Shown: positions 6,065-22,832 of the stretch, in pieces | Numbering within the stretch: position 1 is the first letter of the stretch | How the letters are laid out: every line of letters starts with the position of its first letter | Origin: Orbicella franksi | Lineage: Eukaryota | NCBI GenBank assembly: GCA_964199315.1 | Contig: OZ116698.1 | Span: forward strand, 5,828,001 to 5,892,000 | Direction of reading: 5' to 3' | Length of the DNA stretch: 64,000 nt | Position numbers and translations under genes: made by a program | Notes under the pieces: model-generated | What the model was told of the DNA's origin: nothing | Databases searched by the model: none | What the model saw: the letters and a program-made list of their open reading frames with translations, nothing else

Positions 6065-7413
6065 CTATGTTTGCTGAAGATCGACGCTTTGCGATCGAAA
6101 AAAAACAATATTAGGAAATGTGATTTTACTTAAGCAATTTCCAAACAAACTTTTAAATCCATTTCGAAACTTTTGGTTAAAGGTAAGATAAACGTATGGA
6201 TTGAGCCCACTGTAGGCAAATGCTATTAGAAAAAGCAATAAAAATATAAGATCTGACTCATCTTGTTCATAATCAAAATGGTAGAGGCTACTTCCTACAA
6301 AAAAGGGAAAGAAACACAGCACATATAAAACCACAACAGTTATCATCATCCGGGTAACTTTTCTGGCTGTTTTCATGGCTTCAGCTTGTCTTTGATTCTG
6401 ATTGGTTCCTTCTCCTGGTACCTCACGTGACCAAAGTTTGTGACAAACAATGATGTAAAGAACTGCTGTTATGAAAAGAGGCAGGACAACATTCAAAGAA
6501 ACAGTCAAAAGATAAAATGCTATCTGTTTTTGTAGTAAATTAATTGTATCGCAAAAATAGTCTTGTTTGCTTTTTTCCAAGCTTCCTCTAACGGAGACTT
6601 CTATGGAACAAACAACGGACCAACTCCACAATATTACGATTATCTTTTTAAAATGTCGAGATAAAGGCGAGGACCGGAAAGGTCGAATGACAGCGTAAAA
6701 GCGATCAACAGCAGTGGTCGGGAGAATCCAAATTGTAAAGATGGCCGGAATAAACATGTTTGCTAGAAATAACTTGCAAGTTATCAGACCTACAATGCCT
6801 CCGAACCAGCGCCCTCCCATAAGATATAATAAAAATATGTAGAGATTCCATTAATGTTCTGTAGAGATCAGCGCAGGCTTGATTCAAAATCAAATAATTG
6901 GTTGTGGTCTTCATGGAGTTATCTGTTCGTATAATGTGAATGATAACTGAGTTGCCGAATATTGACGCGGTAAATAAAACGACGTACGCAGTAGATATCA
7001 GACCCGGTACTAGCTGGATGCCTGCTGCCGCCGCAGCACGAGTCTCATTCCCTGTAAATAACAAGATTGAAAAATATCAGTGATATTCGCTGAAATTTGA
7101 CTTAGTGGCTGAATTAATTATGGTGAGTATGATGCTAAACGCTACGGAAACCTGGACACAATTTATGCAAAATTTATTTTCGGCATCTGTAGTTCAAGAC
7201 TTGAAACGTGGACTACCGCGTCCTTTTTCATGGACCGACATTTAGTAACATCGAACACGGCACTGACGAAAGTTTACCTAGCATGTAAGTGAATACTAAA
7301 TCGAGAGTAATTATAAACACTAAATTATTACCTGTACATGGAATATCACTACTTCTGTTAAGATCAGGTTGCATGTCGAGGCCACTGCAATTTGTACCAA
7401 ACGTCAACTTCAT
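6065..7413 (-). CDS. Class A GPCR copy 1 (neuropeptide-receptor-like), two exons, +1 frameshift in exon 2
   Basis: Exon 1 7413-7332 (MKLTFGTNCSGLDMQPDLNRSSDIPCT, donor CAG|GTAAT); exon 2 7051-6065 (acceptor ttacag). Motifs GN (TM1), DRF (TM3), CFFP (TM6), NPYVY (TM7). One extra base relative to copy 3, in the A5 run at 6831-6835. Confidence 0.9.
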
Positions 7414-8759
7414 CTCACTCACAAGGAGCTCTTTACATATTATCTATAATTAAAAATCAGGCCAGGTTTAAAACTTTTCTATAATCGAAAACCTCACCTT
7501 TGAGCATCCAAGCTGAACATCACAACATGATCACAGCTGGAAAGCGCGCCCAAACATAACTCAATTTCTTTAAAGGTGTACTTGGTAAGGTAAGATTACT
7601 GCAAACATTTGCGAGGAAACAGAATGATTTCGTTTACTGCTTGTTTTAATGAAACTGACCAGTTCTTAATTACTTTTTCCCTGATCCTTTGTTAGCTACA
7701 ACTTCCTGCATGGCCCTATAAAACATTTATTTCTCACTGTTTTTGGATATCTTTATATCGACTTACATTATTTTATCCTTGATTTTCTTTGTTCTTGCTC
7801 AGTGCTTGACTTTCGACCAGCTAAAAAACTACATGGCGTGTAATTTGGTTTCTCGTTTTTGCCGTTTTTTCGTATCTATCATTCAACCATCCTTGACGCA
7901 TAAGGTCTCAAATTCCATTTATCAGTACTGTATATTGTACTACAACTGTCAGTGAGAGATAATATTTTTCCATTTGATTTAGAGGTTTTCGTAATGAAAC
8001 TTGTTGGCTCCGTTGTTTTGATAGACATCTAGTCATTTGAACGTCTTGAAAGAGTCATTGTTTGACTTTCTTAAATCCAATATTAAAATAAAAATATTAA
8101 TAAAAGCAGGTGTTTTATGAGGATGGACTTGTCACATTCATAGCCGAAGGAGATTTCACACCCAATCGAGTTCGTACCAAGATGTCAAGCGAGTTTCGCC
8201 ACAGCATTCACTTCACGCTTAAACGTGAAATAATCAGTGTTTTCACTTTTAAGAGTAGTTATTTTAATTTTGGTATATGGTGGACTGTAATTTTTTTGAA
8301 TTTAAATTAAGCTTACTTCTTGATAGACTCACACAGAGAAGGGAGCGAACTCCGGCGGTCAACCCCTCAAAAATGTGTGGTGCAAACTTGATTGGTGCGA
8401 AGTCGATTGGGTGCTCGATAAAACTCGATCAGTGAAATCGAGTACGTTGTAATTTCATATAATTTATAATATGATTAATTGCTTTTTTTACAGAAATTAA
8501 AATTTCCCCGGAGTAGTGAAAAAAAAACACCCCCCCCCCCCAAAAAAAAAAAAACTGGTTCAATTCCACCTGTTAACACCCCCCTCCCCTTCCCTTCCCC
8601 CCTCGGGCATATCCTCAGGATTTGCCTTTTTTTCTTATTTAGCGGGCTATTAATCTGATCTCGTAAAGAAATTATTTGATGTCCTTTCTGTGTGTGAAAA
8701 GGGGCTATTAAATTTTAATTCATACCCTGTTTCGTGCTTCTTGCAAAGGCAAAAGAATG

Positions 8760-10095
8760 GTAAACCAGAAACTGCGGAAGACCGCCTACGAAAAACGCTG
8801 CCACTGTAGGACATACGGTTGCTGACGAGTCCCAATAAGGACGAAACAGCTGTCCACTGTTGCGATCTTGCTTTATCAGTTATTGTCATGTTGGTGTCTC
8901 GAAACGTCTTTCACGTAGTATCAGTCTTGCAGTCTATTGTTTTCCAAAAGAATGGTACATGTCTTCTTCTTCAGGGCACTCCTTTACTTCCATTTGCTCA
9001 CTCTTGGAGATAAAATCTGGTAAAAGAGAGGACCCCGTCATCATAAAAGGCAGGCATTTTATAGAAAACTTATAACATTTGCCACAAGAGAACATTTTAA
9101 AGAAACCTTCTTAACACATAAATTGTAACTACCTTGACATAGAGGATGAGGACAGTTCTTCAACCCACAATATCTTAGCATAAAAATTTAATTGGATGGA
9201 AGACTGGAATCCATGTAAACTTCTCTGAAGAATTTGAAGAATTTGTAAAAAGGAGTTGCATTTACAGTAGACGGGATGAACAGGTTTGAGGGCGCCCTGG
9301 CAAGACATCAATTTTGTAGTTCCACTCTATTTTGAAAACTGTCTCCGCTGCATCTTGTTGTGATAAGGGTTACTTTTGTTGGTAATGAAATGTGCCTCTT
9401 ATGCTAACTTATACAAATGAACCTTGTTGCTAGCAGAATTAACAATAGTTGCAACACCCTGATTATCGGTGTACCATTTAACATAATTTCCCTTGAGCAA
9501 ATGAGAAAAACCTAGTAGAGCATGTTTGACACACAAGCTCTCTCCACGTTGAACTTTCTCTCATTTCAATAGCATCCCAATTCTTGTGCGAAACAGGTTT
9601 GCTGTTCATGGAGATAAAGGCAGCAAACCAACAGCACTAGCATCAAAAAACACCATGCGAGAGGGCAAAACAGGCTTCCTCCATAGTGGTCTGCAATTTA
9701 AACTCCGTAAATGTTCGCGCTAAAATTTAAGTTTTACCTGGACGTCAGCGTCTAAGACAAGCTGCGCATCTCAACCCCTTCTGCATTCAATTAAGCGGTG
9801 CAAGGACTTTGTCATGAGCTTACAAACATTACCCATGATCAAAAAATTAGATATAATTCTCCCTGTAACACGAGCAAGTATCCTTACAGAAACGCAACAG
9901 GACATAATTTCAACAAATTTCTCAAGGATCCCTAAGATTTTCTCCGGTGGTATAAACATACAGTTATTTTTGAAATTCCAAAAAATACCCAGCCAACAAA
10001 TGACCTGAAGGTTAACCCACTGACACTTATCTTTGTCGGCAACAAACCCAGACTTGAAAAGATCCTACCTAACAAGGAAAGAATTCGCTTCGCAT
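8760..10095 (-). mobile_element. Decayed DIRS-type (tyrosine-recombinase retrotransposon) RT/RNase H fragment
   Basis: The minus strand reads DLFKSGFVADKDKCQW...WLGIFW...ARVTGRIIS...FDASAVG...SSTWREL...VKWYTDNQGV, the RT C-terminus and RNase H motifs typical of DIRS elements, with stops and frameshifts. Confidence 0.75.
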
Positions 10096-20990: not shown

Positions 20991-21427
20991 ATCGTACGAG
21001 ATCATTTTTTTTTTTACCGACTTTGCAAGCAAGCGTATGTTTCCAGTCTTGGTCCTATATTACTGAAATGTAGATACGGTAAAATAGAGATCCGTTATAT
21101 TTTAGCCAAGCCGAGTTATATTGCTGTTAGAGTTTTATCAATGCATTCAAAAGTTGTTTTATACTCAAGCTGAGTATAAGTGCATTCTCTTCCACGGAGC
21201 TTTTCGGGTTCACAGTACATAGATACAATATACATTTTCAAAGTAAATTTATTACTCATTAGCTTAAGACCAAGGATTGTATACATTGCACCTGGGCAGA
21301 GTTATGCTTGTAAGTCAAACTGTCGTTTCCCATAGAATTTCTTATAGTTCAAGGATTGAATTTATTGTTGCTTATAGCCTTTAGTCTCTGTACCGCTGGT
21401 TGATAGACAATTCTCTCCGTGGACGGC

Positions 21428-22832
21428 CTATGTTTGCTGAAGCTCGACGCTTTGGGATCGAAAATGAACAATATTAGGAAATTTGATTTTACATAAGCAA
21501 TTTCCAAACAAAGTTTTAAATCCATTTCGGAACTTATCGTTAAAGGTAAGATAAACGCATGGATTGAGTCCATTATAAGCAAATGCTGCCAGAAAAAGAC
21601 ATAAAAATATAAGATCGGACTTATCCTCTACATAATCAAAATGGTAGAGGCTACTTCCTAAGGAAAAGGGAAATAAGCACAGCACATACAAAACCACTAC
21701 AGTTATCATCATCCGGGTAACTTTTCTCGCTGTTTTCATGGCTTCAGCTTGTCTTTGATTCTGATTGGTTCCTTCTCCTGGTATCTCACGTGACCAAAGT
21801 TTGTGACAAACAATGATGTAAAGAACTGCTGTTATGAAAAGAGGCAGGACAACATTCAAAGAAACAGTCAAAATATAAAATGTTATCCGTTGTTGCAGGA
21901 AATGAATTGCATAACAAAAATAGTCTTGTTTGTTTTTGTGCAAGCTTCCTGTAATAAAGACTTCTATCGAACAAGCAAAGGACCAACTCCACAATATTAG
22001 GATTATCTTTTTAAAATGTCGAGATAAACGCGAGGGTCGAAAAGGTCGACTAACAGCGTAAAAACGATCAACAGCAATGGTTGGGAGAATCCAAATTGTA
22101 AAGATGGTCGGAATAAACAAGTTCGCTAGAAATAACTTGCAAGTAATTAGGCCTACAATGCCTCCGAACCAGCGCCCTCCGATAAGATAAGATGAAATAT
22201 GTAGAGATTCCATCAATGTTCTGTAGAGATCAGCGAAGGCTTGATTCAAAATCAAATAATTGGTAGTGGTCTTCATGGAGTTATCTGTTCGTATAATGTG
22301 AATGATAACTGAGTTGCCGAATAATGACGCGGCAAATACAACGACGTACGCAGCATATATTAGACCCGGTATAAGCTGGATATCTGTTGCCGCCGCAGCA
22401 CCTTGCTCATTCCCTGAAAATAGCAAAATTGAAAAATGGCCGGCAGTGATATACGCTGAAATATAACTGAGTGACTTGGTTAATTATGGTAAATATGATA
22501 CTAAATGCTACGGAAACCGGGATGAACGCAGCAGTAAGGGACTCAATTTATGCAAAAATTATTTTCGGCATCTATAGCCAAAGGCCTGAAGCATGGGCTA
22601 CCACCTCCCTTTTCAAGGACCGACATTTCGTAACATTTAACACGGCATTTGCGAAAGTTTACTTTAGAAATACATATTACTTTTAACATAACATGTAAGA
22701 ATGACTAAGTGAACACTAAATTGGAGTAATTATAAACACTAGATTATTACCTGTACATGGAATATTAGTACTTCTGTTAAGAACAGGCTGCATGTCGAGG
22801 CCACTGCAATTTGTACCGGACGTGGAGTTCAT
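21428..22832 (-). CDS. Class A GPCR copy 3 (neuropeptide-receptor-like), intact, two exons, ~355 aa
   Basis: Exon 1 22832-22751 (MNSTSGTNCSGLDMQPVLNRSTNIPCT) plus exon 2 22413-21428. DRF, CLFP and NPCVY motifs; multiple N-glycosylation sequons in the N-terminus. Confidence 0.93.

Follow-up and report, generated by a model that had tools for sequence, protein, structure and literature searches.

The window analysed here, a 64,000-nucleotide stretch of contig OZ116698.1 (C1:5828001-5892000) from the 497-Mb genome of the coral Orbicella franksi, contains three members of a tandem array of genes for G-protein-coupled receptors (GPCRs), in which neighbouring copies are identical over short patches of coding sequence and strongly diverged in between. 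Coordinates are window positions unless prefixed C1. On the minus strand of the window, three open frames of approximately 330 codons match the Pfam family 7tm_1 (best E = 1.7e-37). A fourth member, copy 0, lies at C1:5814947-5815915, about 13 kb before the window start, and, read along the minus strand, the genes follow each other as copy 3, copy 2, copy 1 and copy 0. The first-pass annotation, made from the letters of the window, had placed the array at 6065-22832; this interval indeed begins at the stop codon of copy 1 and ends at the ATG in exon 1 of copy 3, but the array holds the fourth member outside the window. Each gene consists of two exons separated by an intron of approximately 280-335 nt. 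Exon 1 comprises 82 nt (27 codons plus 1 nt), encodes N-glycosylation-type motifs and ends at the donor G/GTAAT, while exon 2 opens at the acceptor tttacag/GG and carries all seven transmembrane helices (TM1-7). The exons within the window are as follows:

6065..7052, minus strand: exon 2 of copy 1 (seven-helix body and stop codon), from open reading frames (ORFs), Pfam 7tm_1 and alignment; frame broken in this assembly
7332..7413, minus strand: exon 1 of copy 1, from blastn with exon 1 of the RefSeq model
12152..13144, minus strand: exon 2 of copy 2, intact, from ORFs and Pfam 7tm_1
13480..13561, minus strand: exon 1 of copy 2, from blastn with exon 1 of the RefSeq model
21428..22414, minus strand: exon 2 of copy 3, intact, from ORFs and Pfam 7tm_1
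22751..22832, minus strand: exon 1 of copy 3, from blastn with exon 1 of the RefSeq model; 22832 is the ATG end

The array genes are class A (rhodopsin-type), peptide-receptor-like GPCRs. Copy 2 (E = 1.7e-37) and copy 3 (E = 1.6e-34) match PF00001 over profile positions 1-260 of 260, and copies 1-3 share the signature motifs DRF, CF(L/F)P and NPY(I/V)Y as well as the cysteine pair linking TM3 and the second extracellular loop (extracellular loops, ECL1-3; intracellular loops, ICL1-3). Both cysteines, the R of DRF, P6.50, and the N and Y are invariant across 59 relatives. An AlphaFold2 model of full-length copy 2 (pLDDT 79.5, pTM 0.75) showed seven helices followed by helix 8, with ECL2 folded as a beta-hairpin, and it confirmed the region boundaries that we had placed by conserved motifs. 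The top Foldseek matches of the model were orexin, NK1 and opioid receptors, with a target-normalised TM-score of approximately 0.75. The protein of copy 2 is 99% identical to a RefSeq protein of Orbicella faveolata named 'substance-P receptor-like', for which a literature search combining Orbicella and 'substance-P receptor' returned nothing. Tachykinin receptors indeed share the class A peptide-receptor fold, and, of the solved structures, NK1R scores best by sequence (E = 1e-25). However, identity is only about 25%, and the other nearest solved structures, the orexin, somatostatin, opioid and PrRP receptors, are matches of about the same quality. Specific orthology to tachykinin/substance-P receptors is not supported, as NK1R, NK3R, orexin and somatostatin receptors are alike at E values of 1e-25 to 1e-23 and about 25% identity. 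The RefSeq name is an automatic label rather than a statement of orthology.

At the nucleotide level, the array copies are approximately 86-91% identical, and the duplicated unit of about 2.7 kb takes in the promoter and exon 1. For comparison we used the RefSeq assembly of another individual (L032, with genes F1 and F2), a metagenome contig (L033, with M1), three holobiont assemblies that were made from long reads of other taxa (L034-L036 and L050-L052, with genes A1-2, B1-3 and C1-2) and coral metagenomes of the Joint Genome Institute (JGI; L037-L044). Synteny of the array is kept in other coral taxa. Copy 3 was not seen in the RefSeq scaffold L032, where positions 3340-9060 form an N gap.

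The alternation of identical and diverged segments is most obvious between copies 1 and 2, and the following features describe it, together with two further identical runs that involve copies 3 and 0 (p-values are from the permutation test described below):

6329..6510, minus strand: tract A in copy 1, 182 nt without a difference from copy 2 across TM5, ICL3 and most of TM6; p <= 2e-4 on 56 concordant polymorphic sites
12422..12603, minus strand: tract A in copy 2, exact match to copy 1
21692..21873, minus strand: counterpart of tract A in copy 3, with 3 differences from copies 1 and 2
6593..6688, minus strand: tract B in copy 1, covering ICL2-TM4 with no difference from copy 2 over 96 nt; p = 0.0012
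12686..12781, minus strand: tract B in copy 2, exact match to copy 1
21785-21888 in copy 3 and 12515-12618 in copy 2, minus strand: identical run of 104 nt in TM5-ICL3 (nt 539-642 of the coding sequence, CDS), p = 0.0035
12216..12312, minus strand: TM7-helix 8 segment of copy 2, 97 nt identical to copy 0, 37 concordant polymorphic sites, p = 2e-4
6524..6589, minus strand: ECL2 coding segment of copy 1, unconverted, with about 16 differences from copy 2, of which about 14 change the amino acid; beta-hairpin in the AlphaFold2 model
12617..12682, minus strand: ECL2 coding segment of copy 2, from alignment; beta-hairpin in the AlphaFold2 model
21887..21952, minus strand: ECL2 coding segment of copy 3, from alignment

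What had been read by eye in the first-pass annotation was confirmed by direct comparison. The 180 nt described as shared by copies 1 and 2 (6331-6510 and 12424-12603) lie inside the exact 182-nt match, the approximately three differences noted for copy 3 are exactly 3 of 182 positions, and the identity described for ICL2/TM4 is exact over 96 nt. The diverged island between tracts A and B (6511-6592) is ECL2. Heavy divergence of the extracellular segments was likewise correctly described: the three ECL2 peptides quoted there occur in the translations, and nonsynonymous divergence per site between copies 1 and 2 is 0.24 in the N-terminus, 0.35 in ECL1, 0.26 in ECL2 and 0.33 in ECL3, compared with 0.00-0.07 in ICL2, TM4, TM5, ICL3 and TM6.

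Between copies 1 and 2, none of the 47 and none of the 24 silent sites in the two blocks differ, whereas silent divergence elsewhere in the gene is 22.7/154 = 0.147, and the non-coding divergence amounts to 0.151 in the intron and 0.21 in the 3' flank. Given a rate of 0.147, the probability of finding no silent change at approximately 71 sites by chance is about 1e-5. Uniform silent divergence (dS) along the gene, which the first-pass annotation had named as evidence against its proposal of patchy gene conversion, was thus not observed (0/71 in the blocks compared with 0.147 elsewhere). Absence of conversion, with the identity of TM5-ICL3-TM6 and ICL2-TM4 explained by strong purifying selection or a low mutation rate, would be compatible with the nearly invariant amino acids of ICL3 and TM6 in relatives of approximately 50% identity and with a silent divergence of the block that is about 36% below that of the remaining gene even between taxa. 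However, silent divergence of the block is 0.126 between taxa but only 0.000-0.021 among copies 0, 1 and 2, indicating that the block is not a cold spot for silent changes; in the rest of the gene, the corresponding values are 0.197 between taxa and 0.147-0.200 among the same copies. We consider such an explanation improbable and largely refuted already, also because permutation on family-variable sites gave significant runs that between-taxon pairs did not show.

This permutation followed the GENECONV-type test that had been suggested as a check in the first-pass annotation and used only sites that are variable in the family, thereby removing the effect of conserved stretches. Significant tracts were found in copies 1-2, 0-2 and 2-3 at the positions given above (p <= 2e-4 to 0.0035), and in another taxon, genes B1 and B3 share a tract in TM3-ICL2 (p = 0.0015). 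A significant tract (p < 0.01) was present in 4 of the 11 pairs taken within a genome, as against 1 of the 80 pairs taken between taxa (Fisher p = 6e-4). The TM5-TM6 region was affected repeatedly: besides copies 1-2, 2-3 and 0-1/2, the genes A1 and A2 (p = 0.03) and the distant pair L016-L017 (p = 0.004) of a second gene cluster have tracts or reduced silent divergence there. In four unrelated GPCR arrays on contigs C11 and C5 (20 genes that are 93-99% identical), 1 of 47 pairs reached p < 0.005, indicating that the test is not over-sensitive and that the mosaic is not universal, although its power is low in such young arrays.

Trees were also inferred separately for flanks and block. In the sequence outside the blocks, copy 2 clusters with A1 and B1, its orthologues in other taxa (support 100/98), and the flanks reject both a clade of copies 1 and 2 (p-AU, from the approximately unbiased test, 3e-5) and a clade of A1 and A2 (0.0015). 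In the block, by contrast, the paralogues A1 and A2 are grouped (90/88) and a clade of copies 1 and 2 is allowed. Taken together, silent-site homogenisation, the permutation test, its between-taxon control and, less clearly, the comparison of flank and block trees bear out the proposed patchy gene conversion, and interlocus gene conversion between neighbouring copies is well supported and, in our estimation, likely to have occurred.

Unequal crossing-over producing chimeric genes could in principle generate mosaics as well, since tandem arrays undergo unequal exchange; here, the duplicated unit of about 2.7 kb reaches across exon 1 and the promoter, and the array contains a spare exon-1 module. 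Within 1 kb, however, copies 1 and 2 alternate from diverged to identical, diverged, identical and diverged again, which requires four breakpoints, and the intron and 3' flank are 15-21% diverged, while each crossover yields a single switch together with a change in copy number. Two short tracts or one patchy tract fit this pattern better, and we regard crossing-over in place of non-reciprocal conversion as a very unlikely origin of the mosaic. Sites at or beside the conversion tracts additionally hint that some of the exchange may be recent: at CDS nt 428, copies 1 and 2 share a G in the present assembly, where F1 and F2 have a C, and at nt 435, 734 and 743 copy 1 has the state of copy 2, while F1 and M1 keep copy-1-specific bases. 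The diagnostic sites do not resolve which copy served as donor.

The mosaic is not an assembly artefact. Collapse of repeats, or overwriting of one paralogue by the other during short-read polishing, might be suspected in an assembly whose copy 1 has what is probably a homopolymer error or a private indel at 6831-6835. However, the separate short-read assembly with F1 and F2 (L032), the metagenome contig with M1 (L033) and the JGI contigs J43 and J44 (L043, L044) show the same block identity and copy-specific flanks in other individuals. In the Logan contigs of sequencing run X3, from another DNA sample, one unitig spans exactly 6329-6510 of copy 1 at a depth of 38.9, compared with 11.9 and 15.3 for the flanking copy-specific unitigs. 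Such a roughly threefold depth is expected in a de Bruijn graph for a genuine exact repeat common to approximately three copies. The assembly collapse that the first-pass annotation had listed among possible objections was consequently not seen, and we consider the probability that the identity arose during assembly or polishing to be minimal.

Related genes elsewhere in the genome put the array into context. A second cluster at C1:6869182-6973657, about 1 Mb away, contains approximately 17 related genes or fragments with 41-58% protein identity to the array, several of which are partial or have in-frame stop codons. Its members are mostly less than 78% identical to each other and share short runs in ICL1/TM2 only, apart from L016 and L017, which are 93% identical and share an identical run of 150 nt from ICL3 to ECL3. 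We found no sign of conversion between this cluster and the array, and none of its members is near-identical to an array gene.

Whether selection has driven the extracellular segments apart is less clear. We estimated omega, the ratio of nonsynonymous to silent substitution rates, for 18 sequences in IQ-TREE (GY+F3X4) with a separate tree for each partition. Omega was 1.23 for the 60 extracellular codons and did not differ from 1 (twice the log-likelihood difference, 2dlnL, 1.45; p = 0.23), and for ECL2 alone it was 1.87 (p = 0.052 against 1; 1.87-2.03 across analyses). For the intracellular and transmembrane partitions, omega was 0.48 (p = 3e-5) and 0.41 (p = 3e-17), respectively, and the value for the whole gene was 0.545 (2dlnL = 60.4 against 1), which is high for a neuropeptide receptor. 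With our own implementation of the site models M1a and M2a on fixed segment trees, M2a was preferred with three segment trees (2dlnL = 19.2, p = 7e-5; 6.9% of codons at omega 2.6), whereas with five segment trees, which were meant to absorb more recombination, the preference shrank to 2dlnL = 6.7 (p = 0.036; 2.6% of sites). Of the 15 candidate sites for omega > 1 (posterior > 0.5), 11 fall within the extracellular part, which makes up 18% of the protein (p = 2e-6), and one site only, located in the ECL2 hairpin, reaches a posterior of 0.95.

These results can be read in two ways. The loops may differ by neutral drift under nearly absent constraint, with low identity alone blocking conversion there; the extracellular omega close to 1, the single well-supported site and the weaker M2a signal with five trees are all consistent with this idea, which we hold to be a serious possibility at somewhat less than even odds. 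On the other hand, omega for ECL2 approaches 2, the three-tree comparison favours M2a, and extracellular replacement changes greatly outnumber silent ones in the orthologous pairs W2-A1 (33 vs 3) and W2-B1 (25 vs 1), while a conserved Cys, Trp and hairpin show that the loops are functional. Diversifying selection, which the first-pass annotation had named as one possible cause, is not established by these results. As recombination inflates such tests, we rate diversifying selection on the loops as no more than suggestive, at slightly below an even chance.

On the cytoplasmic side, conversion accounts for a smaller part of the similarity than had been assumed. Homogenised 'intracellular halves', as the first-pass annotation put it, is an overstatement: between copies 1 and 2, conversion is confined to ICL2-TM4 and TM5-ICL3-TM6, whereas ICL1, TM1-3, TM7 and helix 8 with the C-terminal tail show ordinary silent divergence, and the tail contains 7 replacement changes. 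Amino acid conservation of ICL1, of the stretch from the end of TM5 through ICL3 to TM6, and of helix 8 reaches the 59 relatives of about 50% identity from several coral genera. Because the same stretches are kept in such distant relatives of other genera, most of the intracellular conservation is family-wide and attributable to long-term purifying selection rather than to conversion.

As a whole, an old tandem array with later short conversion tracts and copy-specific loops is the explanation that we consider probable. In this reading, the paralogues are older than the separation from related coral taxa, and the copy 2 lineage has orthologues elsewhere. Later, ectopic conversions of approximately 100-180 nt overwrote patches of one copy with the sequence of a neighbour, namely ICL2-TM4 and TM5-ICL3-TM6 in copies 1-2, TM5-ICL3 in copies 2-3 and TM7-helix 8 in copies 0-2. 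Such events erase silent and replacement differences alike, leaving the N-terminus and ECL1-3 with their old copy-specific sequence and an omega of approximately 1.2-2. Purifying selection on the cytoplasmic surface may hold nucleotide identity high there, and high identity is required for homologous repair to start, which would let tracts arise and survive in these segments. The repeated involvement of TM5-TM6 is in keeping with this idea. Conversions overwriting the loops might either fail to initiate in diverged sequence or be removed by selection. The outcome would be a set of receptors with a common signalling face and differing ligand-facing surfaces. That G-protein coupling stays constant while ligand recognition varies, as proposed in the first-pass annotation, is a functional inference.

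Several observations weigh against this explanation or parts of it. For the 243-nt block, the orthology topology is 11 log-likelihood units worse, but with p-AU = 0.126 it is not rejected, the block being short. Silent divergence of the block is lower even between taxa (ratio 0.64), so that some constraint or older conversion contributes to it. The M2a signal weakens with more segment trees, as described above. The tracts number about five, too few for the sparing of the extracellular loops to reach significance on its own, and one marginal tract in another taxon spans the N-terminus and TM1 (p = 0.045). Finally, no reads of the raw polyA RNA run X23 matched copy 1. For copy 2, words of the CDS were found among the contigs from 14 RNA-library runs, which is only a hint of expression, and in the RNA-library contigs of X15, coding and flanking parts of copy 1 are covered alike at low depth, which is no proof of expression. 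In a stronger version of the explanation, selection itself would divide the receptor in two, with repeated conversion keeping a 'constant' signalling module uniform among neighbours while 'variable' ligand-facing loops are shielded from conversion and driven apart; this version appears unlikely to us at present.

Two members of the array deviate from an intact receptor gene. In this assembly, the frame of copy 1 is broken by one extra A (plus strand) in the homopolymer run at 6831-6835, and its Pfam 7tm_1 match consequently falls into two pieces. The extra base is missing from two other DNA samples (X1, X3), from F1 and from M1, and the genes F1 and M1 are intact; the frameshift is therefore a private allele or a homopolymer or assembly error and not a fixed pseudogene. 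Copy 0 has kept its open frame, while a 24-nt in-frame deletion removes AVDRFYAV, the DRY-type motif at the end of TM3. The JGI metagenome contig L041 carries the same deletion, which is thus a real allele. From its sequence, copy 0 is probably a non-signalling or decaying member, although it exchanges the TM7-helix 8 tract with copy 2 despite lacking the DRF motif. Among the genes of other taxa, B2 (L035:9971-10978) has a 1-nt insertion with a frameshift near the tail, and A2 (L034:19029-20024) and B3 (L051/L052) stop a few codons early. Such altered C-termini are consistent with birth-and-death turnover, of which the expansion of the second cluster with its partial and stop-bearing members, the loss of DRF in copy 0 and the C-terminal frameshift in B2 are typical features. 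The resemblance to chemosensory or immune receptor arrays that had been pointed out from the sequence is supported in this respect by the overall omega of 0.55, one member without a DRY motif and approximately 17 relatives 1 Mb away.

Arrays of olfactory receptor, V1R and TAS2R genes in vertebrates evolve by birth-and-death with occasional conversion. Like these, the coral genes are compact, arranged in tandem, high in omega and accompanied by pseudogenes and lineage-specific expansion, but they differ in being nearest to peptide receptors in both sequence and fold. Closer parallels are found among other class A GPCRs. For the chicken FFAR2 (GPR43) paralogues, extensive conversion and a raised dN/dS near the ligand groove, read as positive selection lowering effective conversion, were reported (Meslin et al. 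2015, PMC4453067). Tandem expansion and conversion among paralogues are common to both systems, whereas the chicken family, in the same account, comprises approximately 23 copies of 87-99% identity, compared with four copies of approximately 86-91% identity, short tracts and a cnidarian host in the present case. Gene conversion was also reported for the mammalian CC chemokine receptors CCR2/CCR5 and CCR1/CCR3, where 19 of 20 positively selected sites are extracellular and the transmembrane and intracellular parts are constrained (Metzger and Thomas 2010, PMC2880985); the coral array resembles these clustered paralogues with its conversion and its mostly extracellular candidate sites. The chemokine receptors have known immune ligands and pathogen interactions, and the signal of positive selection is weaker in the coral array.

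Among the amplified gene families of corals, rhodopsin-like GPCRs are the most abundant domain, arrays stay clustered for long periods and the roles of the genes were described as unknown, while gene conversion in tandem arrays was stated to be 'very rare' (Noel et al. 2023, PMC10236652). The present array agrees with this description in being a set of amplified rhodopsin-like GPCRs with long-kept clustering and synteny, and differs in containing several significant tracts.

Further structures were observed in and around the array. Between copies 2 and 3 there is a spare exon 1:

15704..15785, minus strand: spare exon 1 with no GPCR body behind it, part of the duplication 13351-13844 / 15575-16068

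The spare promoter/exon 1 module (15575-16068) is situated 2.1 kb upstream of the exon 1 that belongs to copy 2 and has an intact ATG and donor; the same module is present in the RefSeq scaffold (L032:1925-2006). The spacer between copies 2 and 3 has been locally duplicated, as it contains direct duplications of 88-94% identity (13841-14976 vs 16174-17287 and 14971-15573 vs 17840-18437). In other taxa, transposon-type genes lie between the GPCR copies (L034:17625-18644, L050:14858-16894, L036:1276-4915), comprising reverse transcriptases as well as QRICH1/DUF3504 together with a phage-integrase-like ORF. On the plus strand of the window, two long open frames rich in serine and proline (705-1235 and 48443-48961) are probably exons of unrelated genes.

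The pattern is not new in kind, given that vertebrate GPCR clusters show the same, and the array represents a new coral example of it. At the same time, it is a statistically supported counter-example that qualifies the statement on the rarity of conversion in coral arrays (PMC10236652). Conversion tracts of 100-200 nt can go unnoticed in paralogues whose overall divergence appears high, and such tracts bear on the dating of duplications, on orthology calls and on dN/dS scans in corals. The unconverted and fast-evolving ECL2, N-terminus and ECL3 are the most likely locations of residues determining ligand specificity and offer a starting point for deorphanisation. If signalling and recognition modules are indeed partitioned as outlined above, conversion in coral tandem arrays would be far commoner than published, and corals would possess a small combinatorial recognition repertoire, possibly for symbionts, microbes or settlement cues, built on GPCRs of the peptide-receptor type.

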